Shown here: positions 14,363 through 34,309 of the stretch, in pieces
Layout of the letters: every line of letters starts with the position of its first letter
Position numbering within the stretch: position 1 is the stretch's first letter
NCBI GenBank assembly: GCA_965240325.2
Contig: OZ251226.1
Location: forward strand, 558,001-622,000
Source of the DNA: Rebecca billardiae RCC1528
Taxonomy: Eukaryota > Protista > Haptophyta
DNA: 64,000 nucleotides
Direction: 5' to 3'
Notes under the pieces: generated by a model
Databases searched by the model: none
Told to the model about the DNA's origin: nothing
What the model saw: the letters and a program-made list of their open reading frames with translations, nothing else
Translations under genes and position numbers: made by a program

Positions 14363-17300
14363 TCAGGTGGCGTGCGCCCCGTCGGGCGCGACCACTGACG
14401 CGCCGCTCCGCCCGCTGCGGTGCGAGGAGCCGCTACGTCCGGAGAGCAAGTTGCGCCGAGAGCCATGTCGACTGCTGCCGCCCGTGCTGGCCTCGGCGAT
14501 GTGCTGGGCGTGGCTCGCCCAGGTCCAGCTCGAGTCGCGATTGACGAGGCGCGAGCGTTGGCCCGGAGTGCTCTGGAGCAGCGCCCGCGGCCGCAGCGCC
14601 GCCGACCTGACCGAGCCTGGCTGCTCGGCCTGGTCGCGCCTCGCGCCTTCTCGCACCATCGCCAGGATCTTGTCGTGACTGCTCGGCGGCAGGTGCTTGG
14701 CGAGGATCGTGGGCGGCGGCGCACGGCGGTGGCGGGGCTCGGAGCGCCCCATCATCGAATGGCGCCGGCGCGGCCCGCTGGCTGCGCCGCCGAGCGCAAC
14801 CGTTCGGGCGGCTGAGTGCAGACCGCCAGCCGGCCGAGGCGGCTGGCCGGTGCTCAGCTCGGTCCGTCCCTCCTCCACGGATGGGCACGAGCTCATCAAG
14901 CCCGGAGCCGAGGAGCGCGCGGCGGAGCCGGCGGCACCCTCCGACCGGCGCAAGCCGCGCCATTCGGGCGCGCGGGTCCTTAGGCCATCGCTCGTGCGCT
15001 GCCGGGTGAGCCACCAGCGGGGCCGAGCCGAGCCCGCCCCAGCCGCGCCGTGATGCACCGCCACCGGGCTCGGTGGCCTGGCGACGGCGTCGGCCTGGTC
15101 CCATTCCCTCGGCGTGCTCGAGCTCGAGTCCCGCCCGCTCCCCGCGCCGCCCGACTGCGCGAGGCCCATGCCCTCGAGCTCGGTGCTGAGCGCGCCTGCC
15201 GCGACCCGCGCCACGCTCAGAAGGCCTCCGAAGAATTCGCTCGGGAAGTAGCGCTCGGTGGTGGCCGGGTCGGCGTCGAGCAGCACGGCCTGCGAGGCGG
15301 GGGTGCCGCCTCCGCCCCCGCCGCCGGCGCCACCGCCGTCGCCGCCGGCGCCAGCAGCCTGCTCCTCCGCCACGCGCTGCAGCTTGGCGAGCAGTAGCAG
15401 CCCCAGGATCGGGTCGACCAGCTTGCTCTTGTCCGCCTCGTCCGAGAACTTCCCGTGCAACACGAGGGCGACGGAGTCGAGCCAGCCCGGCCGCTCGTGC
15501 AGGGGCAGCAGCGCGGGGCCCTGCAGCGCGGCGGGCGCGGCCTCGCGCTGCGCGGCGGCGGCGGCGTCGGAGCCTCCCGCCACCACCTCGCGCTCCTCAC
15601 ACCGCGCCGCCGCGCCCGCCGCGCCACCGCCATCCCACAGGTGCATGCCCACCTTGCCGCCGAGCGTGAGCCTCGACCACTGCTCCAGCCTGCACCAGCC
15701 TCGCAGCTGCGGCGTGGACGCAGGGGCGCGTGCGTGCGCGCGGCCGGGGCGCGTGGCTCGGCGCACGCGGCGCGCATGGCGCGGCGCTCGCGCCGCCGCG
15801 CGCGCGCGCGCGCACTTGATACGTGTCGACGCCGCAGGGCGCGCCGGTGTCTGCGTGCGTGGCGGGCGGCGCCACGACCACAAAGTGGCGCATCGCTGCC
15901 GCGCACACCGCGAGCGTGTCGATGGCGCGCTGCTTGGACGTGGCGTTCTTCTGCGGGATGCACGAGTAGTCGATCTGCGCGCCGCGCAGGCGCACAGCAC
16001 GGCCGGCGGGCGGCGGGTTGAGTGCCGCGCGCGCGCGCGCGGGAGGCGCGCCCGGCGCGCGCAGAGGCCGCGCGTACCCACACATAGAGCTCGGCGGGCT
16101 GCGCGCCCGTCCGAGCGCACAGCTCGGCGCACGCCGCACAGATGGCGTCGAAGTGGACGTTCTGGGGGTCGGGCTCGGAGGAGCCGAGCCACTGCGCGCG
16201 GAGGCGCGGCGAGCGCAGGGCACAGCGCGTCAGAGGCCGCCGGCGCGTGCGCGCGCGATTCGGGCGAGCACGCGAGTTGAGAGAGCGGCGGGCGTGCGAG
16301 TGCACACGCTCGACGCGCGGCGCGGCGCTGGCTGGCCGCTCGGGAGCCGCACACAATCATCGGCAACGCACAGCGCGCGCGCAGCAGCAGCAGCAGCGGC
16401 ACGGGCCCCTACCGCGCGCACGCGCTCGCCCTCCCTGCTGCTGCCGCGCGCGCGCGCCCGAGGTGCGTCTCTCGGCCGCCAGATCGCCATCTCGCGCGCG
16501 TGTGCGCACCTGGTGCGAGACGAAGACGGTCTCGTGCCGCGCGCAGAAGGCCCTCAGCTCCTCGTACGTGTCGAGGGTGGCGAGCTGCGCGCGCACGTGC
16601 TCGTGCGGCGCGAGCCGGCCCAGCGCGCGCAGGCTGGCGAAGGGCAGCAGCACCACGGGGCACTTGAGCTCGACGACTGTCGAGAGAGCCGCGAGCACGC
16701 GCGCCACGTTCGCCTCGTCCTGCTCGCGCTGCGCCACGAGAGCCGAGCGCACGCGCGCGGCGGCGCGCGAGGCGCCATAGAGCAAGGCCGCGAGGACGAG
16801 CGCGCCGATCACCGCCGTGAGCGCGTACACCAGCGCAGCCCGCCAGAACGCCACCTGGTCCGTCGACGGGCTGGCGCGCACCATCACCGTGGCCGAGGCC
16901 GAGCTCGCGCCCTCCTCGTCCTCTGCGACGTATTGCAAAGCGCTCGAGCCGGGCGCAAGCGCGCGCACCCACACCGTGTGCTCGCCCAGCGGGAGCGAGG
17001 CAGGCAGCCGCAGCGCGCGCGCCGACGCCTCGCCGTCGCGCTTGCTCGCGTACAGCTCGAGGGCCGCCCCGTCCTCCTCGAGCGCCTGCAGCCTCACCAC
17101 CAGCGAGCCCGACCCATCGGCGTCCGCCTCCGCCGCCGCCGACCCCGACGAGCCCGCCGCGCCGCCGGCGGCACCGGAGGCGTCCGAGTGGCTGTCGACA
17201 TCGTCGACCGGCAGCCTGACGGGCACGAGCTCGCCGACCGTGAGCTCCGCGAGCACGTCCGACGCGATCGGCGCGTCGTTCCGCGCGCCGATCGACAGCT

Positions 17301-20220
17301 CGACCACGCCCGCCGCGCGCGCCGAGCGCAGCGGCTGGCCGGGGCAGTCGGTGGCCGAGAAGCCGAACCAGTCCGACCCGTGCGCGTCCGCACGCGGCAC
17401 GTAGGTCACGGTGCGCACGCCGGTGGGGAGCGCGGCGGACTGCAGCGAGGTGCTCCCGATCAGCGCGACGTAGTCCACGTAGTTCCAGTCGTCGATCCCC
17501 GTCTCCGCGCTCGTGTCCAGCTCGAGCCGCACGCGGTCGGTCTTGAAGTGCGTGCGGCACGCCGGCACGGTCCACGCGTAGTACGTGCGCGTGCTCGCGG
17601 CCAGCTCGACGGCCGCGCGCTGCGCTGGCTGGCGGAAGAGGCGGGTCCAGCCGCCGCCCGGCGCGCCGACGCGCACGCCGACGACCGCGCCCATCCCGCG
17701 CGGCGAGCCCACCTCCACGCTCACGACGTACACCGCCGTGCGCACGCGCAGCTCCACCCACTCTGTGAAGCCCCGCTCCGGATAGGACGGCACTTGCGAG
17801 TGCGAGAAGGCAAACTGCGGCCCCCATCGGCCTCCGGCCGGGTTGGAGAGGTCGCGCGCGCCGATGAAGCCTTTGCTCGCCGGGCACCACGCTCCCGCCC
17901 GCACCGGCGAGACGTCGGAGAGCCGCACGCGCGCGCGCGGCGCGTGCGGCTGCCCGCTCCGGAGCGGCGCGCAGTCGGCCGGGTAGCTGGCCGTCCTGGC
18001 GGGCGCGTCCATAGCACACGGGACCCACGCGCCGCTCGCGCCGTCGCGCCGCCACTGCGGCAAGTACTCGATGTGAGCGTGCGTCGGGGCCGCCGCGCCG
18101 AGCCCGGCGCCGTCGGCGCCGCCGCCCGCCGCCGCCTCGTCCGCCTCGAGCCCGAGCACGCGCGCCGGAATCCCCGCCGGAGCCGCCGGGTGGAAGAGCA
18201 GCTCGCCCTCGCGCGGCACGCCGCCCGGAAACTCGCCGATGCACTCGCCGTACAGCGCGCACGAGGGTGGGCCGATGAGCTGGATCGGGTGGTAGTCGGC
18301 GAAGGCGCCGGTGCCCCAGTAGGACGAGACCGCCGTCACCTCGTGCACGTACTGCGTGAGCACGTCGCCCACGGCGTACGCGTTGTGCTCCGCCTCGATG
18401 TGCACGCGGCCGCTGTGCGCGAACGGGTCGGCAAAGAACAGGTCGCCCTTGGCCGGGAGCCTCGTGACAAACAGGCCGAACGGGTCGTCGCCCTCCGCGT
18501 TGGTCGCGCGCAGACGCACCTCCACGCCGCCGCGCGCGTCCTCCGCCACCTCCGCGCGCGTGCGCGCCTCGACCACCGGCAGCTCGTCGAAGGGCGTCAC
18601 GTCGAGCGTGAAGTTCATCGTGGCTCCGAGCAGCAGCGCGCCGCCGGCGTCGGCGGCGCCGCCGAGCGCCGCTGCCGTGTCGTTGAGCGCGCGCGCGAGG
18701 CCGAACGAGTCGAAGGCGCGGCCGAACTCGTTGGCGTTGGGCTGGTAGAAGACGAACGCCGAGCTGCCCGCGAGCACCGTGAGCGCCGCCTCCACCCGCG
18801 CGCCGGGCCTGTACACCATCTCCCACCTGGCCGTGCCGTCGTCCGAAGCCCCTGCCGGCCGCTGCGAGAAGACGTGGGCGGCGAAGAGCGCGCCGCGCTC
18901 GGGCAGCCGCGTGACGACGAGGTGCTCGGGCTGGCCGAGCGCGCCGCCGCCGCTGTACACCTCGAGCAGCTTGAGCTCCCCCTCCGCCAGCGTGACGTGC
19001 GTGAAGATCGCCGCGCCGCCGTCCACTGGCATCGGCAGCGGCGGCGCGAGCGGCCAGACGTGCACGGCGGTGCCGCCGTCGCCGTCGGCGTCGATCTCGA
19101 GCGCGAGTGGCGCGTCGAACGGCTCGGGCGCGGTGAGGTTGAGCACGCGGCCGTCGTCGAGCGCGAGCGAGAGCCGCTCGCCCGCGCGCGCCCACGCCAC
19201 GTACGGCGCGCCCGGCCGCACCGCCTTGCGCAGCGGCCGCGAGAGCGGCGGCGGCGTGCGCTCGGGCGGCCGCAGCGCGAGCACGTGCCCCTGCAGCCGC
19301 GCGAGCTCGACGGCGTCGCGCATCTCGGGGTGGGCGTGCACCATCTGGCCGAGGAGCAGGTCTCCGTCCGGGCCGATCGTGCCCAGGTTGCGCTCGACAC
19401 GCGACACCACGCCGCTGCCATTGACCGCCGCGGCCGCCGGCAGCGGTTCGTCAAAATCGTACAGCAGCAGCAAGTCCGGCTCCAGCCCGGCGCGCAGCCG
19501 CGCGGTGAGCGAGGCGTTCCAGCGCTCGGCGATCTGCCCGGGCGAGAGCGCGCCGCCGAAGAGCGCCACGTCGTCGAGCTGCCCGCGGAACCCGAACTCG
19601 TCGTTCACCACCTGGTGCCGCTCCGGGTTATCCACGTTTTGCGGGTACACGTGCGCGCCCAGCGTCGCAAACGGCCGGTCGTCGATGAGCGAGCCGCGCA
19701 GGTCGTCGGCGAGGTCGTAGCCCACGCCGTCGAAGTAGGCGCGCAGCCTGCCGTCCGATGCGTTCCACGTGAGCGCGTAGTGGTGCCACTGCTGCCCGTA
19801 CTCCACCGTGAGCTCGTCGAGCGCGTCCCAACGGATCGGGATGTCATTCGAGAGAATCATGTGGCCACTGCTCGATTGGAAGGGCACAAAGTGGCAGCAC
19901 GCGGCGGTGCGCACGAGCTGGAAGTGTATCCGTGGGCCTCTCGACGCGGACTCGAGCCCGTCGGTGCGCGCCCACACCATGAAAGTCGCGCCGCGCTCGA
20001 GCTTGGCCACCTCGGGGTGCGACGCGTCGAGGGCGCGCGCGCGCTGTCCCGCGATCATTGTCGGGTTGGAGAAAGTGGCGACGTAGTTGCGCGCGATCAC
20101 GCCGCGCGGCCGAGCCGCCACGTGCACTTGCGCCGCCGCCGCCGCGGCGACGAACACGGCGCGGGCGAGCTGCGCCACCCGCGCCCCGGGGGCTGGGCCC
20201 CCACGCCCCGCTCCAGACAT
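14363..20220 (-). CDS. Large single-pass receptor-like protein: LamG + Ig/cadherin-like + galactose-binding-like ectodomain, TM, cytoplasmic HET/TIR-like domain; exons 20220-16510, 16191-16078, 15974-15816, 15706-14363
   Basis: LamG motifs QWHHYALTWN..LRAYFDG, FRGQLDDVALF; repeated YxPxA..GxDxF/NDAP Ig-like units; TM AALVYALTAVIGALVLAALLYG; three GT-AG introns restore FVSHQW, YVWIDYSCIPQ, YQLRGWCRLEQW. Confidence 0.8.
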
Positions 20221-20259
20221 GCTGAGTCGCGGGTGGTCGTCGGCGTTGCGCCGACGCGT

Positions 20260-21144
20260 TTATTCGACCAATCGGAAAGAACCGATGCTGTGGAAACTGC
20301 GGGGGCCTGGCGGCCTTGTCCCGGTGGGGCTGGTCGAACACAGCGCGTCTAGGACGCGACGGAGAAGCTTGCCAGGGCCGGCAGACCCGACGACGATGGG
20401 ACGAGTTGGCCGTTCAGCGCTGACCGTAAGTAACGGTATCATCCGGGCTGCCGCGTCTTCTGAGCGCGTCGCGCGTGCGATTAAGCCAGGCGCGGCAGCG
20501 CGGCACTCTTCTGCAAGGCCCACCGAGGCGCACGGCGAGGCGCGCGTCGATGCAGTCGTCGCTGCGCACGGCCGCTCGGGCACGACGGCACGGCAACGCA
20601 ACCGACTAGTAGCACGGCGTAGACTCCTGCAGCCGTCGCTGAGCACGGCCCGTCGGGCACGACGTGGTACGAGCGGCTCGCGTCGGTGTGCATGTTGTGT
20701 CGTGCAGCTCGCGCCGGCGGGCACGCACCTCCGCGATGGCGCCGCGAGCCGCGGGCGGCGCGGGTGACGGCTCGAAGGCCGCGCCCGTTGATGACGAGCC
20801 AGGGAGAGTAATAGTCGGGCAAGTCGGCGAGCGGGTGGCTTATGGTAGGCTTGTGGTACAAGCTTCTCCATGAGGCCGTTCGTGCACGTCATCTGATGCG
20901 GCTGCGGCTGCTTGATCGCCGCCACGTGCCGCTGGATCTCCGCCAGATCGGCGCAGTTCCTCGCGACGCCGACGATGGCATCTGGCGCTGGGTTCGGCGG
21001 AGGCCCGCGGAGCTGATCCTCGTCGCGCACGTGTGTGCGAGCGCGAGTGCCGGCAGCGTCGTCGAGCCACGCCGGCGGAGCGCCAATCTGCGTGTCGCGC
21101 GCGGCCTTCGCCGCCTGCAGCAGCGCGCTGAGCTCGTTCGTCAT
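20260..21144 (-). CDS. Possible hypothetical protein, structure uncertain
   Basis: ATG-initiated ORF MTNELSALLQAAK...; GTGCGT donor-like site near 20728; no recognisable domain. Confidence 0.3.
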   Translation of the reverse strand: MTNELSALLQAAKAARDTQIGAPPAWLDDAAGTRARTHVRDEDQLRGPPPNPAPDAIVGVARNCADLAEIQRHVAAIKQPQPHQMTCTNGLMEKLVPQAYHKPPARRLARLLLSLARHQRARPSSRHPRRPRLAAPSRRCVPAGASCTTQHAHRREPLVPRRARRAVLSDGCRSLRRATSRLRCRAVVPERPCAATTASTRASPCASVGLAEECRAAAPGLIARATRSEDAAARMIPLLTVSAERPTRPIVVGSAGPGKLLRRVLDALCSTSPTGTRPPGPRSFHSIGSFRLVE

Positions 21145-21800
21145 ACTCAATCGTGTGTGCCGAGCGCACGCGGCGCGGCGGCGAAGCACTCTCAATGTGG
21201 AAGGGATGGTCGTAGAAAAGCGTCAACAAATAGGTGAGAATCGCAACGACGTCCCTATGAGGCGCGCTCAAAAAGGTAACGACATGCGTTCTCGATTCCC
21301 AAGGCGTGCCTAATCAAAAAACGGTTGAGGCCCAGTTGTTCGTATTCCTACTCCGGTATTACTTTCCTCAGCAGTATTGGACACACAATTAAAGGGGGTC
21401 GGAGCTGGGTCTCCCAGAGCTTTGAATACAATTAAAATTCCTTAAAGCTGTGTTCACCAGAATTAGATAGTTCGATGACAATCATTCGATCAGCCTGACA
21501 GGCTGCTCTCAGCAGTGAATACTGTGCTTGCTGCAATGGCCGCCTCGATGAGGTGCGGCAACGCGCCCCTCACCTGCCTGCGCCGGTCTGTTTTGTGGCG
21601 GTGTCTTTATGCAGTGTTGGATGGCGTCAATCACGCCTTAATAATCAGTTCAATGACAATTCATGCCGAGTTGGTTCGCGCGCAAGCGTTGCTGTGTCAC
21701 CGTCACGCCGAGCGGGACTGGCGGTCGGCTGCCACTCCCCGAGGACACTGTCACAACGAGACCCGTTGGAGCCAGTCGGACGTGGGGCACGGCGGCGCGG

Positions 21801-22622
21801 TTAGAGCAGCGCGGACTGCTGCTTGAGCAGCACGAAGTAGTCGGTGAGGTAGATTGTCATCGCGATCGGGATGGCGACCGAGATCAGGTTCTTGTCGACA
21901 CCCCTCCACAGCCAGCGCACGCCCTGCTCCCGCGTTAGCCGCCTGCACACCTGGCTGAGCGACTCGTCGGTCTTGAACATCTCGTTCCGAATGATGTCGA
22001 AGGGGTTGGTGATGGTCGCACCCGCGATCCCCGCCGTCACCGCCTTCTTCGCCGAGCGCAGCCGCACCTCCGAGCGCGGCGCATCCGCCGCCGGCTGCGG
22101 CAGTGCGTGCTCCATCGCATCCTTGACGAAGACGGCGACGCAGTACTTGGGCACCGTCTTGAGGATGCCAGCGGACGTGCCGTGCCAGAGCGCGCCGACG
22201 CCACGCGACTCGCGGATCCCCTGCATCGCCGACGCCACCGTCCGCCACGGCGACTCTGGGTTCTGAATCGTGATCGAGGCGCGAATGATCGGCTGGTTAG
22301 CGACCTGCACGAGCGACGAGATCACGAGCGGCGGCGCGACCATCGCGACCGTCGGCGGCGCTCCGGCGGCGATGAGGGCCTGCTTGCCCGCATCCGAGCC
22401 GTAGAAAATGCTCGCGCGCGCCCACGTCATCCCCGCGAGCACCGGCCCGACTCCTCGCCATGGCGGCTTGAAGGCATTTGCGTATTTGCCAAGCATGCCG
22501 CCGCCCTCCACTTTGAAGCCCGACTGCGCGACGGCGGAGGCTCGCCACAGCGGGTAGTTGACAAACGCCGCGGCCAGCGACGCGCCGAAGTAGCAGTCCG
22601 CGTCCGCGCTGCCCGCGCCCAT
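21801..22622 (-). CDS. Mitochondrial carrier (SLC25 family), divergent
   Basis: Three-repeat carrier pattern NYPLWRAS, NQPIIRAS..GVGALWHG, TNPFDIIRNEM..GVRWLWRG. Confidence 0.85.
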   Translation of the reverse strand: MGAGSADADCYFGASLAAAFVNYPLWRASAVAQSGFKVEGGGMLGKYANAFKPPWRGVGPVLAGMTWARASIFYGSDAGKQALIAAGAPPTVAMVAPPLVISSLVQVANQPIIRASITIQNPESPWRTVASAMQGIRESRGVGALWHGTSAGILKTVPKYCVAVFVKDAMEHALPQPAADAPRSEVRLRSAKKAVTAGIAGATITNPFDIIRNEMFKTDESLSQVCRRLTREQGVRWLWRGVDKNLISVAIPIAMTIYLTDYFVLLKQQSALL

Positions 22623-22975
22623 GCCTGCCGGGTGCGAGTCGGTCCTGGACAGGTGCTCGGGAATCTCGCAGTGCGCAAGGCCGGTGCTGCCCCACCGTGC
22701 TCCGTCGCTCCGGTCGCATCCACCGTCATTTCGTCCCGAGTTTACCGCCGCCCCCCCGCCGCCGAATAATGCGCATGCGAAGGCCGGAAAACGGCCTGTA
22801 GTTTGGGGCTGGTTTTTTTTCGGAGGCGAAAATTCACCTTTTAGTGGACCTTGCTCGGAATCATCCAAAAGTGAAAAGGCCAAATCGGCTGGCTGTGGTC
22901 CCACCGGGAGTCGGCGCGCTTTGAGAGCGGCGGCCGCCCCGGCCCGTCAAGCCGAGCGCAGCCGTTGGACGCACG

Positions 22976-25003
22976 ATGGAGAAGAAGGCCTCGTTCAACA
23001 TCCCCGACTCCATCAAGGACGGGTGCGCGCGCGAGCGCGCGCGTGCACGTCCCTCGCCGTCGCTCGTCCGCCGCGCGTGGCACGGCCTCACGCGCGGCCG
23101 GCTTTCCGCCCGCGCCTCGAGCGCAGCTGGCGGCGCACAAAGCAGACGACCAAGGTGAAGCTGGGCAAGGCGGACGCGACGCAGGATGACGAGGACTTCG
23201 ACCACCTCGTCGTGCAGTGCAAGGAGCAGCACCAGCAGCTCAAGCGTGTGTACAACGCCATCGTCTCGCATGTGAACGCGCTCAAGCACTCGGCTTCCAG
23301 CGGTCTGCAGCTCTCGACCGATCTCACCGAGTTCTACTCGGACGTGGCGGCGGAGCACCGGCCGTTGGCGGTGAGCAACCAGAAGGCGTGGGGAGAGACT
23401 GTCGCGATGAGCGGCCGCTTCCTCGACAACCTGATGGAGGCGAACGTGCTCACGCCGCTGCAGCACTCGCTCGCTGAGTACGACCGTCTCGCTGAGATCT
23501 GGGACGAGCGCGTCAAGCGGCGGATGGACTACGACTACTACAGGCGCGCGCGCTGGGGGCGGGCGGCAGAGGGCGCGCTCGTCGCATCCCCGCGTGCCTG
23601 GCGCCCGAGCTGCTCGTTCGCCTGCGCCCACACGCCTGCCCGCCTGGCGCCGCCCGCGCGCGCGTGCGTCGGCGCTGGTGCGCCGCTGCGCAGGACCAAG
23701 ACGGGCGCGCTCGAGCAGAGGCGCGAGAAGCAGAGCGACGAGAAGATCGCGCGGAACGAGGCCAAGCTCGAGCAGTCGCGCCGCGTGTACGAGGCGCTGA
23801 CCGAGGAGGCGCGCAAGCGGATGCGCGAGCTCATCTCCGAGCGGTACGCGACGTTCGGAGCGCCGTTCACGCAGATGGTCTCGGCGGAGCGCGCGTTCAT
23901 TGTGGAGCTGCACAAGCAGCAGGAGGGCCTCGCGCAGTGGTCAAACGACGTGGCGATCGCCGCCGCGGCGCAGTCGTCGCACGCGCGCCCGTCGCGCCGG
24001 CGGGAGTCGCTCTCGCGCGAGGCGCTCGTCGCCGAGGCGCCGGTGGCGGGCGCGTACACCGACCGCTCGCGCACAGCCTCGGTGGAGGAGGTGGGACCGT
24101 ACGGGAGGGGGGGCGGTGGCGGCGCGGTGGCGGAGCCGGAGGTATGAGCGGACGCGCGCGCGCGCGCGCGAGCGGCCACACGCGTGCCTGCCTTTGCGCG
24201 CGCGCCGTCGCTCACCGGTGCCGCACGGCCGCTTGGCGCGGCGCCGGCGCCGCGCGCCGCGCTCGGATGCACCGCAGGTGCCTGTGGTCTCCATGGAGCA
24301 GCTCACGACGCGCGACGGCCGCTCCGGTTCGGCCGCGAGCAACGGCGCATCGACGGGCGCGGGGTATGCGCCGCCCGCCAGCCAGGGCGGCGCGCAGAGC
24401 CAGAGCAACCCGTTCGCGGACTTGATGGGTGACTCGGCCCCGCCGGCGCAGCAGCAGCAGCCCGCGCCCGGCGCGCAGCCCGGGCCGATGGTCGATCTGC
24501 TCAACGACTCTGCACCCGCGCAGCCTGCGCAGCAGCAGCAGCAGCAACAGCAGCAGGCGGGCTCGGAGCTGATCTCGTTCGGCGCGGGCGAGCCGCTGGA
24601 TCCGCTCGTCGCGCTGACGTCGTCGCAGCCGCAGCAGCCGGCAGCCGTGCCCGCCCCGGCCCCGGTGCCCGCGCCGAGCGGCGGCGGTGAGCGGTACCAG
24701 GCGCTGTGCGACTACACGCCGGGCGACACGCGCATGCTGACGATTCAGAAGGGGGACGTGCTGATCAAGGAGCGCGAAGAGGACGGCTGGTTCTACGGCT
24801 CGAACCCGCAGGGCATGTCCGGCTACTTCCCGTGCGCGCGCGCGCCGTCCGCGCCCGCCACGCGCCCGGAGTGCCTAGGCACCAATGCCGCTGGCAGGCC
24901 GCTGCTGCTCACACCGCCGCGGCCCACCCTCCCCCGCCTGCGCGCGTGCCCCATCACTCCGGTTCACTCTGTGCGCAGGCCAAACTACTGCAAGAAGCTG
25001 TGA
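22976..25003 (+). CDS. BAR-SH3 endocytic adaptor (amphiphysin/endophilin-like); introns 23023-23126, 23544-23693 (GC-AG), 24142-24277, 24832-24978
   Basis: BAR motifs KLGKADATQD..F, RRMDYDYYR; NPF motif; SH3 YQALCDY..LTIQKGD..DGWFYG..GYFPPNY. Confidence 0.88.
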
Positions 25004-25819
25004 TCCGCCGTGTAGCTGCTGCTGCCCGAGTCCCTGCCGAGGCCTCGGGCTCAGGCACAGTTCTTTCTATGCGACGACCACCAGCCGGTCAGTCTTCAGT
25101 CTGCCCAGTCTTCGGATTCAGTGATGCGCATTTTGCGCTCGGAGGACCGGCACCAGCAAGGCACATGCGCCATGCTGGCGTGCGAAGCGAACCCGCTCCC
25201 GCCGACCGCTGGACCGTGGCCAAGGTCCGCCGTACGGCCGATGCGATGGCGGCGACCGTGACGACCGAGTGAGTGGCCGCGAGATCGATCTCACCGGTCG
25301 TCGCGCCCTGCGTCGACCGCGGAGTCCCGCGTCCGGCCGTCCGCGTCTCACTCGGTGCGGGCTGCGAGTGCGGCGTAGTCACTAGTCGCCGTCGGCTGAG
25401 TGTGACTGTCTGACTGAGCGAGTGCTGCCTGGCCTGAGTGAGACTCGGCGGACGCAGCCGGCGGGTCGGAGCGCCGAGCGGGCGCGCCGGGCGCCGGCGG
25501 TGCTCCGGCGACGCCAGGGACAGGGTCATGCAAGCAGTAGGTCCGCCGCGTCTATTAGCTATATATATATATACTGCTAGCTGTCATCAATGCGGCGACG
25601 TCAACTAGTTTGACTTCATCAAGGGCTGTGAGTGAGTCAGTGAGTAGCTAGTGACTGTGACGAGCCTGGGAGTGGGGGCTTAATGGGGCGGCAGGCTGCC
25701 AGGGCCCGGCCGGCGCGGCCCCGCACCGTGTCCGTGTGGCGTATCGTCCTTGAGTGCCCGTGACCGGCTCGACGCCACGGCATTCGCGACTGAGAGCAGT
25801 CCGCCGCGGAAGCGTCGGG

Positions 25820-26425
25820 TCAGATCAACTTCTTCATCTGGAAGTACCGCTTGAGGTAGTAGATTTGCCACAGGCCCATGGCCACCAGGATCGTAAGCGT
25901 CATGATGTTGAACCACAACACGCGCGTGTTGGTGGTCTCGTTGGTGTCTCGCATCTCCTCCTCGCGCCCGCGCATGTAGATCATCTCCTCCTTGATCTGC
26001 AGCGCCATGTCCCTCATCTTGTCGAGCTGCTTTTCTATTTGCTCGACGTGGTCCTTTCGCGCGATTGAGGAGTGGTCATCAACCTCGACGCCCTTGCGCA
26101 CGGTGACGACAACCTTACGCCTCGTCGGCGAGGAGTTTGAGAAGCAGACCTTATGCAGCCCGGTGGACTCCGTCGTCACCGCGAAGTGGTGCGGGTCCGA
26201 CGTCGTCCGCTCGAAGAGGACGACGCTCAGCGGGCCGAGCACCTTCACGTGGCCCTCAAAGTCAGCGGTGGGCTCGATGGTGTAGTCGCCCGTGAAGAGC
26301 GCCTTCTCCGGAAGCTCCTCGGAGATGCAGCGGCTGCTCTGCGCCTCCACCCAAAACTGCGTGGCGCTCGCTGCCCTCGCGCACGCGGCCAGTACCAGCG
26401 CGCGGAGCCCTCGCCGCGCAGCCAT
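25820..26425 (-). CDS. TMED10: p24/emp24 GOLD-domain cargo receptor (TMED10/p24delta-like)
   Basis: Signal peptide, CISEE, REEEMRDTNETTNTRV, TM, YLKRYFQMKKLI* dilysine tail. Confidence 0.9.
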   Translation of the reverse strand: MAARRGLRALVLAACARAASATQFWVEAQSSRCISEELPEKALFTGDYTIEPTADFEGHVKVLGPLSVVLFERTTSDPHHFAVTTESTGLHKVCFSNSSPTRRKVVVTVRKGVEVDDHSSIARKDHVEQIEKQLDKMRDMALQIKEEMIYMRGREEEMRDTNETTNTRVLWFNIMTLTILVAMGLWQIYYLKRYFQMKKLI

Positions 26426-26549
26426 CGCTTCCCCGGGTGGCGGCGCGCCGGACCGCGCGAACTCGGCGAAGCGACCTCGTCCTCCGCGTCCTGACGTCCT
26501 GGCCGTCCGCGTGGGACGTGAAGTTGCTCATCACCGCCCGGGCTACGCA

Positions 26550-27533
26550 ATGGCGTCCGTGACGTCGGAGGAGCTGCCCGGCAAGTACGGCGAGCCGTCG
26601 GCCCGTGACATCGTGGGCTACGGCGCGTCTCCGCCGGACCCGAAGTGGCCCAACGGCGCGAAGGTGGCGCTTTCTCTCGTTCTCAACTACGAGGAAGGCG
26701 CGGAGGCCTGCCTGCTGCACGGCGACAATGAGTCGGAGAAGCTGCTGTCGGAGATCGTGGGGGCGGCGGCCCTGCACGGACAGCGCCACGCCAACATGGA
26801 GTCGTTGTACGACTATGGCTCCCGCGCCGGGTTCTGGCGCCTGCACCGCCTCCTCACGAGCCGGCGCGTGCCCTGCACTGTCTTTGCGTGTGGGATGGCC
26901 CTCGCGCGCAACCCGGAGGCCGCGACGGCCATGGCGACGGCGGGCTGGGAGGTGGCCTCGCACGGGTACCGCTGGCTGGACTACCAGGATGTCGACGAGG
27001 CCACCGAGCGCGAGCACATCGCCACCACCGTCAAAGTGCATGAGCGCCTTTTTGGCAAGCCGCCCGTTGGGATGTACCAGGGCAAGCCGAATGTGAACAC
27101 TCGCAGGCTGGTGGTCGAGCACGGCTCGTTCCTGTACGACTGCGACTCGTACGCGGACGACCTGCCGTATTGGAGCCTCGAGCACGACCGCCCGCACCTC
27201 GTCGTGCCGTACACGCTCTCCGAGAACGACATGCGCTTCGCGATCCCGAACGGCTTCTCGCACGGCGGCGAGTTCTCCAAGTTTCTCATCGACTCCCTCG
27301 ACTATCTGGTGGAGGAGGGGCGGCAGGGGATGCCCAAGATGATGAGTGTCGGGCTGCACTGCCGGCTGGCCGGCCGGCCCGGCCGCGCGAAGGGACTCGC
27401 TGACTTCCTCGAGCACGCGCAGGGGCTCGGCCCGGACGTGTGGATCTGCACGCGCGAGGAGATTGCGCGGCACTGGTACAAGCACCACTGGCCCGCGGGC
27501 CACGGCGAGCCGCCCGCAGCTGCGCTTGCATGA
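26550..27533 (+). CDS. puuE: PuuE-type allantoinase (polysaccharide deacetylase fold)
   Basis: RDIVGYG..WPNGAKVALSLVLNYEEGAE, MESLYDYGSRAGFWRL, EVASHGYRW, YADDLPYW, NDMRF, KMMSVGLHCRLAGRPGR, EIARHW. Confidence 0.92.
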   Translation: MASVTSEELPGKYGEPSARDIVGYGASPPDPKWPNGAKVALSLVLNYEEGAEACLLHGDNESEKLLSEIVGAAALHGQRHANMESLYDYGSRAGFWRLHRLLTSRRVPCTVFACGMALARNPEAATAMATAGWEVASHGYRWLDYQDVDEATEREHIATTVKVHERLFGKPPVGMYQGKPNVNTRRLVVEHGSFLYDCDSYADDLPYWSLEHDRPHLVVPYTLSENDMRFAIPNGFSHGGEFSKFLIDSLDYLVEEGRQGMPKMMSVGLHCRLAGRPGRAKGLADFLEHAQGLGPDVWICTREEIARHWYKHHWPAGHGEPPAAALA

Positions 27534-28551
27534 ACCAGCTCCTGACACCAGGTCGTTGCGTCCCTGCGCCTCGCACGGCGGGCAAGCGCCCCTCGACACC
27601 CGCGCAGCTGTTGGCGAGGGCAGGCGACGATGCCGTTGCCGTGATCGACAGATGACATGTGTGATGCGGTCTGGTGACCAGCCCAGTCCGACCAGCGTGG
27701 CGCCGACTCATCGGCGACAGCACGACCGACGTTCACGTACTCGGCGACAGCATTCTGACCGGATTGAGCCACAGGGGGTTGCCAGTGTATTAGTGTAACG
27801 CGCGCGGGTCTCCCTCTCCCGCTGACGTCCGCGGCATCGCCTGTGGCGGATGCTGAGCCATGTTATCGTCACCATGTAGCTCTTGCTGACTCTTCGGCAG
27901 CGGCACTACTGTCACACTGATTCAGAAGATTGAAGATCGAGTCTCGACTCTCGGCTGCATGCACGTGACGTGCATACGGACTACGGCAGTAGCGTTACAA
28001 GCTCACCGACGACCGTGCGCGTCAGCGCGAGGACAGTGTCAGGCGTGTCCTCGAGTGGCCTGGCTGTGCTTTACAGTACGATATACTTGCTGCTGACTAA
28101 GCAGCCTATAGGCTCATACAAATCATCACTCACTCATCCGCGACCCGATGACTCCCGGGATGAGGCATGACCAGCCACTACTGACCAAGTACTAGGCCAC
28201 GACATCCGAATCATCATCCACCAGCTGCTGACCAAGTAGGTGACGCCCTTGCCGACACAACATGCTCACCCGTCTTTGACTTGGTACCCATGCACTTCCT
28301 GGCGGGCCTGACGACGTCGATGACGACAACAACAACATCAACCCTGGCGACCAACATCAACGTGCTCATCACCTCATGAACACCACTGCCACTGCGAGAC
28401 GCACACTGACACTTGTTACCAGGGCACTCGGAACTCGGAAGCTAGTGCTTGATGAATGAAAACCCACGTGGCGCCATCGCCGAAGCGGCGTTGACGACCT
28501 TCCTTCCGCTCGGCCGGACGCGACGCGCGCTCGTCGGGGACGTGCGTCAGC

Positions 28552-29619
28552 ATGCTCGGACGCTTCAGCCCTCTGGTTCGCGGGGCCGCGTCGGCGGCGG
28601 CGGCCGCTGCCTCGGGCGCAGCGGTGGGTGCGTGGGCCCTCGGCTTTGCCACCCCCGTCGCCGAGGCGGAGCCCTACCACGGCGCGAAGATGTCGACGCT
28701 GCGCGAGACAGACTACCCGATCCCCGACCACTACCACGGCAAGTGGCGCGTGAAGGTGCTCAAGGTGCGACGACCGCCGCCGGGCGTGGAGGCGCGGCAC
28801 GACATCTCTGAGTACATGGTGCGCGTGTGGCTCTGGTCCGACGACTACGAGAAGGTGTACACGAAGGAGGACAACGCAGACCTGGTCGCGACCGACACGA
28901 CCAAGAACACCGTGTACATCGTCGCGAAGCGCACGCCGTGCGAGACGCCGGAGCAGTTTGGCATCGACATCTGCACGCACTTTCTCACCGAGTACCCCGT
29001 CCTCCAGAAGGTCATGGTCGAGGTCGACGAGAAGCCGTGGACGCGCGCGGTCGTGAACGGCGAGGAGCACGACCACTCGTTCGTGCTCGGCTCCAACGAG
29101 TTTGCGCGCGCGACGGTCGAGATCGAGCGGACCAAGATGGGCGCACTGGGGAAGCCGAGCGTGGTGTCGTCGATCCAGACGATGACGGTCCTCAAGACCA
29201 CGCAGTCCGGCTTCACGGGCTACCTGCAGGACCAGTACACGCTGCTGCCGGAGACGGAGGAGCGGTGCGTCGCGACCGAGCTGTGCGCCGAGTGGACCTT
29301 CATGAAGTCGGACCCGCCGCCCAACTACGCAAAGGTGCGCAAGACGGTGCGCGAGCAGCTCAAGTACGGGATCTTCGGCCCGGCGCGCGGCGGCGTGTAC
29401 TCGGCCTCGCTCCAGGCGACCGTCTACGACGCGGGCTGCCTCGTGCTCGACGCGGCGCCGCACGTGAAGGACATCACCATCTTCACGCCCAACCAGCACT
29501 ACCTGCCCGCGCGCTTCCTCGACCAGCTCACCGAGAAGTTCGAGGACGACGTGTTCGTGCCGACGAGCGAGCCGTCGGGCACGATCTGCTGCCGCGTGGC
29601 GCGCACGAGCGCCATCTGA
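28552..29619 (+). CDS. UOX: Urate oxidase (uricase) with N-terminal extension
   Basis: HGKWRVKVLKV, ATDTTKNTVY, TVLKTTQSGF, YSASLQAT, PNQHY, VFVPTSEPSGTI. Confidence 0.95.
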   Translation: MLGRFSPLVRGAASAAAAAASGAAVGAWALGFATPVAEAEPYHGAKMSTLRETDYPIPDHYHGKWRVKVLKVRRPPPGVEARHDISEYMVRVWLWSDDYEKVYTKEDNADLVATDTTKNTVYIVAKRTPCETPEQFGIDICTHFLTEYPVLQKVMVEVDEKPWTRAVVNGEEHDHSFVLGSNEFARATVEIERTKMGALGKPSVVSSIQTMTVLKTTQSGFTGYLQDQYTLLPETEERCVATELCAEWTFMKSDPPPNYAKVRKTVREQLKYGIFGPARGGVYSASLQATVYDAGCLVLDAAPHVKDITIFTPNQHYLPARFLDQLTEKFEDDVFVPTSEPSGTICCRVARTSAI

Positions 29620-30393
29620 GCTGGCGGCGGCGGCCGAGCATCCTTCGAGCGGGATGACGGTCGCCGCGCCGTTGGCATCGGCGAGTGGCCGACTAGGCAC
29701 GCCGTGACGGCCGGGCCGCGGCGCCGCCGCGGCGCCGCAGCGCCGCCTCCGCGCCAGGTAGCGGCTGCCGCCGGCTGCCCGGCGGGTGGCAGCAGGCGGT
29801 GGCGATGATGGCCTCTGCATCCGAGCGGTCCTCTGCGCGAGCCCAATCCTCGAGGGCGGTCGGCCGCTCGTCACCACGTCATCAGTCCGGCCGCGCATCA
29901 TTCGCGCATCCAAGTAGCTGCGCAATTAAGATGAAAGTCTGAAGTTCGGTGTCTCTCTAATAGTAACGACTTATGATACTCGAATTTACGAATAATTAGT
30001 TTGGTGTCTCAACATCCGCGGCTTGACTAGTGGGTATGCAAATGGTATGCAATCAACGAATCGGGACCGCCTTTCGTCAGGCTGCCCAAACTTCTGCACA
30101 TAGTCCCCACTGAGAGCAGCAACTCCAAGCGTTGCGGCTCTGCATCACTTTATTTTTTGTTAGGGCTACCTCCGTTCTCAAACGCCGTTGATTCGGCTGG
30201 AGGCCGCCGCTGAGCGCGCTTATGGCAAAAAAGCGACCGGGGGCCCCGCGCCAGAAGGGCATGCCGAAACCTGGCGAGTAGTACCGCGTGGATGCCCACG
30301 GCGATTCTGTGCATCCGCCACCTGCCTGTTCGTTCGCGCGCAGATTGCCGCCGAGCGCGCCGCTGCTGTCGCCGACCGCCAAAAGCCGCACTC

Positions 30394-32007
30394 ATGTCGC
30401 GCGTGGACGAGGTGCCCACCCTGCCCCCTGCCGAGCATACCCTCGCCTTCTGCGGCCGCTTCATCCGCACCCCGACCCTCGGCGAGCTCGTGATCTCGTC
30501 GCCGCAGGGCCTCATCCTGGTGGACGAGCGCTCGGGCGCGATCGCGCTCGTGCTCGATCTGGCGGGCTCGTCGGCGGCGTGCGACGCCGCGCGCGCGCAC
30601 GTGGGGACGCTGCCGAGCGAGTGCGTCACCACGCTCGGCCCCTCGCAGTTCCTGCTTCCCGGCTTCGTCGATGGGCACGCGCATGCGCCGCAGTACGCAA
30701 ACCACGGGATTGGCCTGGACCTTCCGCTCCTCGACTGGCTGGAGCGGTACACGTTCCCGACGGAGTCGCGCTTCAAGGACGTGGAGTACGCGAAGCGTAT
30801 CTACCGCTCCGCCGTCGGCCGCCACCTGCGCTTCGGCACCACCACGTGCTCGTACTTTGCGACCATCCACCGCGAGGGCTCTGAGGAGCTCGTGCGGCAG
30901 GTGCGGCTCGCCGGCCAGCGCGCGCACGTGGGCAAGGTGTCGATGGACCGGAACTCGCCGCCGAACTACATCGAGCCGTCGGCGACGGTTGCCGCCAAGG
31001 AGGCCGAGCTCTTCGTCGACAACGTCCTCACCTCGCGCAAGCACGACGAGAAGTGCGGCGAGGGCAGCGCGAAGCCGCCGCTCGTGACGCCGGCCGTCAT
31101 CCCGCGCTTTGCGCCGTCGTGCACGCCCGAGCTGATGGCGGCGCTGGGGAAGCTCTCGCGCCGTGGCGAGCCCGGCGGGCGCGGGCCGCTGCCCATGCAC
31201 ACGCACCTCTCCGAGAACGCCTCGGAGTGCGCGTGGGTGATGGAGATGCACCCGGAGGCCTCGTGCTACGCAGACGTGTACCGGCAGGCGGGCCTGCTGC
31301 ACGAGCGTTCCTACTTTGCGCACTGCTGCCACTGCAACCCCACGGAGCGCGACATGCTGCACTCGCACGGCGCGGGCGTGGTGCACTGCGCCGCGTCGAA
31401 CTTCCTCGTCGGCGGCGCGCTGTGCAACGTGCGCCGCTGGTTGGAAGAGGGCGTGCCCGTCGCCCTCGGCACGGACGTGTCGGGCGGCTGGTCCGCGTCG
31501 ATGCTCGATGCGATCCGGCAGACGGTCATCACCTCCAACCTCGTCAGCCGCGCGCCGGACGAGAACGAGCGCAAGTGGGCGCCGCTCACGTGGCAGGAGA
31601 CGCTGTACCTCGCCACGCAGGGCGGCGCGCGCGTGCTCGGCCTCGCCGACGTCACCGGCGACCTCCGGCCGGGCCTCCAGTTCGACGCGCTCCTCGTCGA
31701 CGTCGCGCCGCCGTGCGGCGGCGCCTTCTGCGTCTTTGACGAGGACGACACGCAGATGCGGCTCGAGAAGTTCCTCTTCACCGGCGACGACCGGCACATC
31801 GCCTCGGTGTACGTGGCGGGGCGGCGAGTCGCGGGCGCGTCGCAGCCCGCGCCGCGCTCCACGCCGCGCGGGACCGCCTCCGGCTCGACCGACGAGACGG
31901 CCGACGACCCGCTCGTCGCAAACGCGCGCGGCATCCGCGCGCGCGCCGCCGTGGACGCGGACGAGGCGGCGGCGCGCCCGGCCAAGGCGCTCAAGCTCGG
32001 CGAGTAG
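30394..32007 (+). CDS. GDA: Guanine deaminase (amidohydrolase superfamily)
   Basis: LLPGFVDGHAHAPQY, LLDWLERYTFP.E, GTTT.SYFATIH, PRFAPSC, HTHLSEN, LGTDVSGG, GDDRHI..VYVAG. Confidence 0.95.
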   Translation: MSRVDEVPTLPPAEHTLAFCGRFIRTPTLGELVISSPQGLILVDERSGAIALVLDLAGSSAACDAARAHVGTLPSECVTTLGPSQFLLPGFVDGHAHAPQYANHGIGLDLPLLDWLERYTFPTESRFKDVEYAKRIYRSAVGRHLRFGTTTCSYFATIHREGSEELVRQVRLAGQRAHVGKVSMDRNSPPNYIEPSATVAAKEAELFVDNVLTSRKHDEKCGEGSAKPPLVTPAVIPRFAPSCTPELMAALGKLSRRGEPGGRGPLPMHTHLSENASECAWVMEMHPEASCYADVYRQAGLLHERSYFAHCCHCNPTERDMLHSHGAGVVHCAASNFLVGGALCNVRRWLEEGVPVALGTDVSGGWSASMLDAIRQTVITSNLVSRAPDENERKWAPLTWQETLYLATQGGARVLGLADVTGDLRPGLQFDALLVDVAPPCGGAFCVFDEDDTQMRLEKFLFTGDDRHIASVYVAGRRVAGASQPAPRSTPRGTASGSTDETADDPLVANARGIRARAAVDADEAAARPAKALKLGE

Positions 32008-32893: not shown

Positions 32894-33838
32894 CTAGCTC
32901 AGCCTGTAGATGCGCACGGCATTGTCGTGGAACAGTGCCCGGAGCTGCGCCTTGCCCAGCTTCGCCTCCTGCGCCACCTTGTGGTACATGCCCCAGCGCT
33001 CCTTGGCGCTGCTGAAGTCGATCAGGTCGACGGGCAGGTTCGACGAGAACATGCAGCGCTCCACGCCGAACGCCTCGATGCACGTGAGCACGTGCTTGCG
33101 CGTCTCCTCGACGTCGAAGCCGCCGTCGTACGCGCCGAGCCCGCCAATCTTGCACGCCACGTTCGGCACAGCCGCGAGCTTGGCGAGGCCCCTCTGCCAG
33201 GCGTCGAACTCGCCGCGAAGCGGGAACCCGGCGTGGTTGAGCACGACCTGCAGCTTCGGGAAGCGCGCGGCGAAGCCCGCCGCCTCCTCCAGCTGCACCG
33301 CGCACACCTGCAGGTCGAAGATCAGCCCGCGCGCCTCGAGCAGCCCCACGCCCTTCAGAAACGCCTTGTCGGACATGTAGCGCCCGTGCTCGCTCTGGTT
33401 GAGCTCCGGGCGTGTCGGGTGCCAGTCAAGCATGAAGCGCACGCCGCGGAAGTTCTTGAAGTGCATGTGCGCGTCGAGGATGGGCGCGGCCTGCTCAGGC
33501 TTGTCGAGCGGTGCCCATGCGATGATGCCGTCGGGCCGGCCGGTCGTGTCGGCCAGCGCCTGCATGTACGCGGTCTCTGCGATCGGCATGCCCGTGCTCG
33601 CGTGCATGTTCGCCTGGACGTACACCGACTTGGCCAGCGGTGCGAAGGGCTTGAGGTCCGCCGCATGCATCGCCGGCGTGTACGGCTTGGCGACGGGCGC
33701 GAACCGCCCATACGGCGTGTCGTGCGCAGAGCCGCCTGGCACGACCTCACGCAGCCAATGGTGCGTGTCCGGCGACCAGTAGTGCACGTGGGGATCCGCG
33801 ATCGCATCGGGCATACCGCTCATCATCCGCTTCAGCAT
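32894..33838 (-). CDS. Amidohydrolase_2 family protein (sugar-lactonase/L-fuconolactone hydrolase-like)
   Basis: DPHVHYW, FRGVR, LIFDLQ, VVLNHAG.P, NVACKIGG, FGVERCMFSSN.PVD, NAVRIYRL. Confidence 0.85.
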   Translation of the reverse strand: MLKRMMSGMPDAIADPHVHYWSPDTHHWLREVVPGGSAHDTPYGRFAPVAKPYTPAMHAADLKPFAPLAKSVYVQANMHASTGMPIAETAYMQALADTTGRPDGIIAWAPLDKPEQAAPILDAHMHFKNFRGVRFMLDWHPTRPELNQSEHGRYMSDKAFLKGVGLLEARGLIFDLQVCAVQLEEAAGFAARFPKLQVVLNHAGFPLRGEFDAWQRGLAKLAAVPNVACKIGGLGAYDGGFDVEETRKHVLTCIEAFGVERCMFSSNLPVDLIDFSSAKERWGMYHKVAQEAKLGKAQLRALFHDNAVRIYRLS

Positions 33839-34309
33839 GGCTGTGGCAGGTGTGCGCTGCGCTGAAAATCTCCCACCGCGCCAGCTCTGTCTCAACATGC
33901 GCTCACGCGCTTCCTTCCGGCCAACTTCGCGATCGCGGCCACCCGGCTGCCGACCTTGCTGCCAATCTGAAATCAAGATGGCTGCCGTTCCCGATCGAGA
34001 TCACAAATTCGTGACGAACCGGAAGCCTGTAACTACGGCCAGGCGCAACGGCTCGCCCTTGTAGCGACTACTACCAGTACGGAACCGGATCTCGCGCAAA
34101 ACGAACTCGCGAATAACAGCTCCTAATTGAGAGGATCTTGCGCCGTGTGGCGGCGGCTGCTCGACATCTTGATCAGCAGGCTGCTGATTACTTAGTGATT
34201 TTCTAGTGGTTATCATAGAGCACCTGCTGCGACTCGGACTTCACGGCGCGCGCCGGCGCGAACAGGACGGTTGACGCCCACTCCTGGCGCGGGCACCATT
34301 CCCACCGCC

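Follow-up and report, generated by a model that had tools for sequence, protein, structure and literature searches.

What brought three non-homologous purine-catabolism genes side by side in the nuclear genome of the haptophyte Rebecca billardiae, and what might keep them there? In the stretch of 64,000 nucleotides analysed here (the window, to which all positions refer), three uninterrupted open reading frames follow one another on the plus strand, each a single exon: a predicted PuuE-type allantoinase of the polysaccharide-deacetylase fold (26550-27533; 327 aa, ATG at 26550), a factor-independent urate oxidase (Uox; 28552-29619; 355 aa) and a guanine deaminase of the amidohydrolase superfamily (GDA; 30394-32007; 537 aa). 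The GDA frame opens at 30292. Residue 3 of the Diacronema lutheri protein aligns with residue 44 of this long frame, the recorded protein P0241 has 537 aa and begins at 30394, and the ATG at 30394 is the probable start. The spacer between PuuE and Uox (27534-28551), which presumably holds the Uox promoter and 5' UTR, measures 1018 bp, and that between Uox and GDA (29620-30393) measures 774 bp, or 672 bp if counted to the first in-frame ATG at 30292; the distances of about 1.0 and 0.8 kb given in an earlier note on this DNA thus hold for the first spacer, and for the second with the 30394 start. We detected no gene intervening between PuuE, Uox and GDA: antisense and spacer frames of the cluster had no Pfam matches, and the PuuE-Uox spacer showed no similarity to related loci. 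The minus strand directly 5' of PuuE carries a genuine emp24/p24 gene (25820-26425; PF01105, 153.7 bits), so that the head-to-head intergenic region of just 124 bp (26426-26549) is the sole upstream DNA left to PuuE. Together with a BAR/SH3 gene and a mitochondrial carrier gene, p24 places the cluster among eukaryotic genes, which supports the eukaryotic setting assumed earlier. An Amidohydro_2 gene 3' of GDA (32894-33976, minus strand) was considered as a fourth member and rejected, as it matched a sugar-lactonase-like structure weakly and is unlinked in relatives.

The enzyme assignments were judged against the NCBIfam equivalog cut-offs (TIGR03212, 424.6 bits; TIGR03383, 168 bits; TIGR02967, 375.4 bits). 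PuuE scores 451.5 bits with TIGR03212, above the cut-off, over model positions 2-295 of 297 (452.4 bits in the genome scan), and also matches PF01522. It aligns over its full length with Pseudomonas PuuE structures (1z7a, E 4e-112; 3cl6, E 5e-107), its residues 18-315 pairing with residues 6-303 of the P. fluorescens enzyme 3cl6, and is predicted to be a metal-independent, (S)-allantoin-specific allantoinase. Uox exceeds its cut-off with 266 bits over positions 4-283 of 283, carries two PF01014 uricase (T-fold) domains and finds its best solved-structure matches in zebrafish and mammalian uricases. The motifs HGK (near the N-terminus), TDT.KNT, KTTQSGF and PN.HY, which we take to form the active site, are invariant across 12 Uox orthologues (alignment A1) and line up with the zebrafish and mammalian structures, and an Ala-rich N-terminal extension of about 45 aa is common to the haptophyte orthologues in this alignment. 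Eukaryotic peroxisomal uricases usually end in an SKL-like PTS1; such a C-terminus is absent from Uox (which ends ..ARTSAI) and from every A1 orthologue, and all these proteins carry an extension at the N-terminus instead; this bears on the location of the enzyme, not on its family membership. GDA reaches 367.6 bits over positions 7-401 of 401, a miss of TIGR02967 by only 8 bits that is attributable to score-lowering, lineage-specific insertions. It matches PF01979 with 165 bits and the solved guanine deaminases of human (2uz9, E 9e-78), yeast (6oh9, E 3e-74) and E. coli (6ohb, E 4e-56), while the next subfamily, 8-oxoguanine deaminase, scores far lower. Its metal-binding and catalytic motifs HAHAPQY, HTHLSEN and GTDVSGG align with HIHASQY, QSHISEN and GTDVAGG of the human enzyme, its named database homologues are annotated as guanine deaminase, and it ends in a low-complexity tail of about 55 aa. 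Profile scores, solved structures and aligned motifs together confirm, at the level of sequence, the three identities proposed earlier: guanine deaminase, urate oxidase and PuuE allantoinase.

On the route from guanine to allantoate these enzymes occupy steps 1, 3 and 6, which are not consecutive. Step 1 yields xanthine and NH3 from guanine, step 3 converts urate to 5-hydroxyisourate and step 6 (S)-allantoin to allantoate. In a scan of the 72-Mb genome, PuuE, Uox and GDA are each single-copy, and other genes of the pathway (XDH-family loci, a fused OHCU-decarboxylase/HIU-hydrolase, allantoicase and urease) lie outside the cluster. The fusion is of the allantoin-synthase type, a single open frame of 349 aa in which an N-terminal OHCU decarboxylase is followed by HIU hydrolase at the C-terminus, and is located about 880 kb away from the cluster. 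The earlier failure to find xanthine dehydrogenase, HIU hydrolase and OHCU decarboxylase in the window was therefore correct, all of them residing elsewhere in the genome, and genome-wide scans exclude a HIU hydrolase or OHCU decarboxylase hidden in the cluster spacers. Ureidoglycolate lyase (PF04115) was not found in the genome; other enzyme types for this step exist. For a pathway of 7-15 genes among 10,000-30,000, three consecutive genes of the same pathway are expected by chance 2e-7 to 3e-5 times per genome, bearing out the suggestion that three unrelated genes of one pathway are linked here beyond chance.

A comparison with related algae, proposed earlier as a check on the locus, was positive: Uox neighbours PuuE in each of the six pavlovophyte sequences compared, which are divergent from one another (65-85% identity in the cluster proteins), and GDA adjoins them in each of the four with enough context, D. 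lutheri and Pavlovales sp. CCMP2436 included. Order and orientation vary, with four layouts among the six taxa. D. lutheri has Uox(-) PuuE(+) GDA(+), with GDA on the PuuE side, and CCMP2436 has GDA(-) .. Uox(-) PuuE(+); the relative L033 reads PuuE(-) Uox(+) GDA(+) and L021 Uox(-) PuuE(+), and on L028, a single transcriptome contig, Uox(+) is followed by PuuE(+). In four of the six sequences Uox and PuuE stand head-to-head, 46-150 bp apart, but 1.76 kb in D. lutheri. The all-same-strand PuuE-Uox-GDA arrangement is peculiar to the R. billardiae genome and, judged by these layouts, apparently derived. Absence of introns, noted earlier, is likewise true of the three window genes and fails as a general feature, since L033 has two introns in each of PuuE and Uox. 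Outside the cluster genes, L017, L021 and L033 have nothing in common with the 64-kb window above 80-110 bits. D. lutheri does keep neighbours in common with it, a TPT and an ARMH3-like gene, and conservation may therefore partly be plain synteny. With six taxa, four layouts and flanks unshared in three, the linkage nevertheless appears to have been kept beyond background synteny. Among the sequences compared, the cluster is restricted to pavlovophytes: it was not seen with the Prymnesium Uox, on the diatom-clade contig L018, in Ectocarpus, in Phytophthora or in L027, and Uox stood beside PuuE in none of 80 metagenome PuuE loci.

We then have to ask whether the promoters betray a shared control. 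No cis motif common to the three promoters and conserved in relatives was found, and k-mer sharing across 11 regions, upstream or intergenic, drawn from five taxa was limited to GC-rich words expected from composition. ACGT-core/GACGTC sites are enriched upstream of PuuE and Uox in R. billardiae and L021 and absent in L017 and L033. Exact copies of the word GCTCATCACC lie 5' of PuuE and of Uox, and a copy with a single mismatch lies 5' of GDA; the word is over-represented in the window (17 occurrences against 5.7 expected), and was rejected as a conserved promoter element, being missing from the orthologous promoters. Around PuuE we found no flanking inverted repeats that could represent inversion scars, merely short GC-rich chance pairs, and a low-threshold tblastx listing contained noise only. 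As PuuE has no promoter in common with Uox here and the linkage persists, a bidirectional promoter cannot fully account for it. Co-regulation is plausible all the same, because nitrogen deprivation induces genes of the same pathway in Chlamydomonas, GDA1, XDH1 and UOX1 among them, by factors of 4 to 98 (PMC12541418).

One conceivable origin is a bacterial purine-catabolism operon, either transferred as a block or present as contamination of the assembly. PuuE is a bacterial-type allantoinase whose nearest solved structures come from Pseudomonas, Klebsiella clusters such an allantoinase with guanine deaminase (as cited in PMC13751858), and all three window genes are intronless. The other two genes speak against it: the best solved matches are animal uricases for Uox and the human and yeast enzymes for GDA, and the closest database relatives of both are found in haptophytes, ochrophytes, oomycetes and fungi, indicating that they are eukaryotic in type. 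PuuE itself falls into a eukaryote-dominated clade of 39 rows (SH-aLRT 98) comprising stramenopiles and pavlovophytes, so the earlier label of bacterial-type holds for the kind of enzyme, and the phylogeny indicates an old eukaryotic clade and no recent import. None of the bacterial PuuE loci inspected carries a Uox of this type, and the neighbouring genes are eukaryotic. Eukaryote-type Uox and GDA, a PuuE from a eukaryotic clade and the L033 introns argue that this is not a transferred bacterial operon; both block transfer and contamination are already contradicted by these comparisons, and we regard them as exceedingly improbable. Operon-like transcription, yielding a polycistronic or read-through RNA at least of Uox and PuuE, could be suspected from the single strand shared by the window genes and from L028, a contig of 2569 nt (from a JGI record, its PuuE frame also labelled as an MMETSP transcript) with Uox and PuuE in tandem across a spacer of 289 nt. 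This contig is ambiguous, however, given that transcriptome assemblers often merge neighbours with overlapping UTRs, and an MMETSP-labelled GDA orthologue stands alone on a contig of 2014 nt, possibly from an organism other than that of L028. Window spacers of 0.7-1.0 kb also sit poorly with one transcript. Since Uox and PuuE lie on opposite strands in four of the six sequences, co-transcription cannot be the conserved feature, and the "operon-like" same-strand unit of the earlier note does not survive the comparison with relatives. We consider such transcription very unlikely, though somewhat less so than a bacterial block.

A more serious contender is neutral retention, in which the genes came together a single time in the pavlovophyte ancestor and too few rearrangements have since hit the short spacers to part them, the linkage having no functional meaning. 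Spacers of 46 bp to 1.8 kb offer breakpoints little room, TPT and ARMH3-like genes lie near the cluster in both D. lutheri and the window, and no shared regulatory motif came to light. Against this, at least three inversions within the cluster or at its margin have left the genes together, the flanks of L017, L021 and L033 have been completely replaced, and the first juxtaposition of three same-pathway genes is very unlikely to have been fortuitous. We therefore think neutral retention unlikely, if worth keeping in mind, and favour as the probable explanation a lineage-specific eukaryotic catabolic cluster, in which three non-homologous, single-copy nuclear genes have been retained as neighbours throughout Pavlovophyceae. 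Such a cluster would have been assembled inside a eukaryote from parts of mixed ancestry, Uox and GDA of eukaryotic type together with a PuuE of bacterial type that may long have been resident in stramenopiles and haptophytes. Its ancestral layout was probably a head-to-head Uox/PuuE pair with GDA next door, from which an inversion of PuuE in R. billardiae would have produced the tandem PuuE-Uox-GDA and brought PuuE head-to-head with the unrelated p24 gene. Each gene would be transcribed separately, with co-induction when purines serve as nitrogen source, and the linkage may have been kept by favouring co-regulation, through a shared promoter or chromatin domain, or co-inheritance.

Going further, one may tentatively see in this locus a nitrogen-scavenging regulon maintained by selection, a reading we entertain with somewhat more doubt than belief. 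Relocation of genes of mixed ancestry in the pavlovophyte ancestor would have given rise to this regulon; it would be switched on jointly to mobilise guanine and urate from stores or from outside, with the uricase targeted by an N-terminal signal instead of a PTS1, and would be the first cluster of metabolic genes to be recognised in haptophytes. Purine crystals are increasingly recognised as a widespread algal nitrogen store; a preprint describes them in Emiliania and Isochrysis fed guanine and does not mention pavlovophytes. For algal physiologists, the cluster offers three co-located markers for purine-nitrogen use, and the short bidirectional Uox/PuuE promoters of the relatives (46-150 bp) are compact candidate nitrogen-responsive promoters for haptophyte engineering.

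Fungi and plants offer well-documented metabolic gene clusters assembled within eukaryotes, as do some algae in the case of nitrate assimilation. The algal and fungal nitrate-assimilation clusters likewise consist of adjacent nitrogen-acquisition genes, in microalgae in the nuclear genome, that are co-regulated by nitrogen status; they differ from the cluster described here in serving another pathway, in usually including transporters and in having a co-regulation shown experimentally. What we describe is a real gene cluster, of a kind already known in eukaryotes. In the literature searched, we found no earlier description of a eukaryotic GDA/Uox/PuuE cluster, and a 2026 review lists clustering of purine/ureide catabolism only for bacteria and the yeast DAL locus (PMC13751858). 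The hpx/guaD genes of Klebsiella pneumoniae, where the PuuE-type HpxB is linked with guanine deaminase (Guzman et al. 2011, as cited in PMC13751858), resemble the algal cluster in this linkage and in the use of purines as nitrogen source. Both they and the bacterial puu/puc operons have dedicated regulators, transporters and urate-oxidising enzymes of other families, whereas the algal cluster combines eukaryote-type Uox and GDA and its genes are not consistently co-oriented. The allantoin synthase of plants and diatoms, a Urad-Urah fusion (Pessoa 2010 and Oh 2018, as cited in PMC13751858), also couples steps of the same pathway, and R. billardiae has the same fusion; there, however, consecutive steps are joined in one protein that is not part of the cluster.

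The closest parallel is the yeast DAL cluster for allantoin degradation (Wong and Wolfe 2005, as cited in PMC13751858 and PMC10120013). Both clusters are eukaryotic, consist of non-homologous genes for scavenging purine or ureide nitrogen, are found in one lineage each and were apparently assembled in a eukaryote by relocation rather than inherited as an operon; inversions inside the DAL cluster are also documented, according to a paper citing Naseeb and Delneri (2012). They have no gene family in common. DAL comprises an allantoinase of the dihydroorotase type, allantoicase, ureidoglycolate lyase, a permease and malate synthase, serves the part of the route that follows allantoin and accompanied the loss of urate oxidase, while the algal cluster brings together GDA, Uox and PuuE for earlier, non-consecutive steps and is without a transporter. 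As a second, independent eukaryotic cluster on the purine/ureide route, built from entirely different genes in a photosynthetic marine lineage and surviving several inversions, it would be a natural replicate in the study of why genes for nitrogen catabolism cluster.

The window has a GC content of ~67% and is nuclear DNA of a eukaryotic assembly (72 Mb, 41 contigs). Profile scores and solved-structure matches confirmed the three uninterrupted plus-strand ORFs of the earlier note, with their family identities: a PuuE-type allantoinase (26550-27533; TIGR03212, 451.5 bits against a cut-off of 424.6) with full-length matches to 1z7a and 3cl6, two PuuE structures from Pseudomonas; a factor-independent urate oxidase, Uox, with two uricase domains (28552-29619; TIGR03383, 266 bits against a cut-off of 168), whose top solved-structure matches are zebrafish and mammalian uricases; and a guanine deaminase, GDA (30292/30394-32007; TIGR02967, 367.6 bits, 8 below the cut-off with full model coverage), which matches human (E ~1e-77) and yeast GDA (E ~1e-74) and aligns with them in metal and catalytic motifs. 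Translation of GDA probably starts at the ATG at 30394, judging from the alignment of orthologues and from a 537-aa product in the index. Each gene is single-copy in genome-wide six-frame scans, and a family search with the antisense and spacer ORFs of the region gave no match. The nearest relatives of all three proteins, at 70-81% identity, are those of Pavlovales sp. CCMP2436 and Diacronema lutheri, which makes the source of the window another pavlovophyte.

The linkage of these genes is conserved in pavlovophytes: Uox and PuuE are adjacent in 6/6 sequences and GDA adjoins them in 4/4 with enough context, so that the synteny the earlier note had proposed to look for in related algae is indeed present. 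As the cluster proteins share 65-85% mutual identity, the six sequences represent six different taxa. Written with Uox on the plus strand, the window reads p24(-), PuuE(+), 1018 bp, Uox(+), 672/774 bp, GDA(+). The Logan contig L033 has PuuE(-), 150 bp, Uox(+), ~290 bp, GDA(+); Pavlovales sp. CCMP2436 has PuuE(-), ~46 bp, Uox(+), 4.2 kb including N gaps, GDA(+); L021 has PuuE(-), 140 bp, Uox(+), and ends 1 kb beyond; and D. lutheri has GDA(-), 415 bp, PuuE(-), 1757 bp, Uox(+). The 415-bp spacer of the D. lutheri assembly holds a ~70-residue G run 5' of GDA (~9740-9810), possibly an artefact of assembly or a stretch prone to form G-quadruplexes. The sixth sequence, L028 (2569 nt, JGI 3300016846 Ga0186147_100793, labelled MMETSP), reads Uox(+), 289 nt, PuuE(+); this transcriptome contig carries complete tandem ORFs (Uox 58-1116, PuuE 1406-2362) and is either a read-through or bicistronic RNA or an assembler merge of adjacent genes. 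Because the head-to-head Uox/PuuE pair occurs in four taxa (L033, CCMP2436, L021 and D. lutheri), it is likely the ancestral core, from which one PuuE inversion would yield the tandem layout of the window. With orientation differing among relatives and Uox and PuuE on opposite strands in those four taxa, the description as operon-like had to be given up, and we regard PuuE-Uox-GDA as a probable eukaryotic metabolic gene cluster, not an operon. The supposed lack of introns applies to the ORFs of the window and fails in L033, where PuuE and Uox have two introns each.

Three consecutive genes of one pathway are expected by chance 2e-7 to 3e-5 times per genome, for pathways of 7-15 genes and genomes of 10,000-30,000 genes, and still <1e-2 times when 300 pathways are allowed for. 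Part of the conservation may be plain synteny, since TPT and ARMH3-like genes occur both in D. lutheri and in the window, where they are shifted by ~10 kb. Apart from the cluster genes, none of L017 (CCMP2436), L021 and L033 has a gene in common with the 64-kb window. Outside Pavlovophyceae, the Uox of Prymnesium parvum has neither PuuE nor GDA within 10 kb, and PuuE lies without cluster partners in Ectocarpus, Phytophthora, metagenome locus L027 and locus L018, which falls among diatoms in the tree. Uox was found at 0/80 metagenome PuuE loci; ~25 of these are eukaryote-like, several come with 10-20 kb of surrounding sequence, and at three bacterial loci a distant GDA-like gene is close by. 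The eukaryotic relatives of Uox and GDA, which are haptophytes, ochrophytes, oomycetes, fungi and animals, the PuuE tree and the L033 introns together rule out both bacterial contamination and recent transfer of a bacterial operon. The tree, a quick maximum-likelihood one, puts PuuE in a 39-row clade (SH-aLRT 98) made up of oomycetes, brown and yellow-green algae, diatoms and pavlovophytes, the last as a five-member subclade (SH-aLRT 99); nearly all presumed bacterial sequences fall outside the 39-row clade. As for horizontal origin, PuuE is no recent import; it sits in an old, eukaryote-dominated lineage. The cluster is taken to have been assembled inside a eukaryote from genes of different ancestry.

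Immediately 5' of PuuE lies an emp24/p24 (GOLD-domain) cargo-receptor gene (25820-26425, minus strand; PF01105, 153.7 bits); only 124 bp separate the two start codons, so PuuE is head-to-head with an unrelated housekeeping gene. Directly 3' of GDA is an Amidohydro_2 gene (32894-33976, minus strand; PF04909, 131.7 bits), whose sole solved relative is the Burkholderia lactonase-like protein 4dlf (E 2e-18) and whose linkage to the cluster was not found in relatives. Uox begins (residues 1-46, window 28552-28690) with an N-terminal extension, an Arg plus an Ala-rich hydrophobic stretch, then the conserved AEPYxGxK. All haptophyte uricase orthologues in our alignment have this extension and none has an SKL-like C-terminal PTS1; Uox may use N-terminal targeting or anchoring rather than PTS1 peroxisome import.

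As the earlier note held, XDH, HIU hydrolase and OHCU decarboxylase lie outside the window; six-frame scans located them elsewhere in the genome. Two XDH/aldehyde-oxidase-family loci are on contigs C35 and C38; the MoCo-binding domain of the former (C35:215797-216513, plus strand) lies in an open frame of 1876 aa, against ~1350 aa for a usual XDH, and extra domains are possible. A single 349-aa open frame (C8:1466894-1467754, minus strand) on the cluster's own contig, ~880 kb distant, encodes OHCU decarboxylase at its N-terminal end and HIU hydrolase at its C-terminal end, the architecture of the allantoin synthase known from plants and diatoms (cited in PMC13751858). Allantoicase is on C10, a dihydroorotase-type allantoinase/dihydropyrimidinase-like gene scoring below cut-off on C25, two NCS2-family permease-like loci on C13 and C19, and urease on C16, where two urease-alpha matches (1808817-1809289, plus; 1851597-1852067, minus), ~43 kb apart on opposite strands, are possibly an inverted duplication. 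With the other steps elsewhere, the cluster comprises the non-consecutive steps 1, 3 and 6 of guanine-to-allantoate; it holds no transporter or regulator.

Comparison of the loci shows adjacent genes for three enzymes predicted to release or unlock purine nitrogen, an adjacency that has outlasted several local inversions. PuuE, Uox and GDA would be separate transcription units, co-induced by growth on purines as nitrogen source; in Chlamydomonas, genes of the same pathway rise 4- to 98-fold under N deprivation (PMC12541418). With such co-induction, a bidirectional promoter or chromatin domain held in common, or co-inheritance, would favour keeping the genes linked. The first of these is weakened by the window genome, where PuuE no longer shares a promoter with Uox, yet is still linked. 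Motif searches, which the earlier note had suggested for the three promoters, found no cis motif conserved across them and those of relatives. At <=1 mismatch, the 10-mer GCTCATCACC has 17 matches in the window, more than the 5.7 expected; copies lie 5' of all three genes (26526, 28364 and 29866, plus strand) and elsewhere. Its absence from the orthologous promoters of relatives rules it out as a conserved promoter element. As for stored purine crystals as a possible source of the nitrogen, a preprint describes guanine or xanthine crystals in guanine-fed Emiliania and Isochrysis, with pavlovophytes unmentioned.

The enzymes themselves are ordinary. Our full-text literature searches found no description of a haptophyte or algal purine-gene cluster, and a review from 2026 on genes of uric-acid catabolism (PMC13751858) gives clustering only for bacteria and yeast; PuuE-Uox-GDA is a clean and conserved example, apparently undescribed before. 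That review also cites operons of Klebsiella in which PuuE-type allantoinase and guanine deaminase are linked. Most similar is the DAL cluster of yeast (cited in PMC13751858 and PMC10120013), which shares the broad pathway of the algal cluster and arose by relocation, as we propose here, but has no gene family in common with it and covers later steps.
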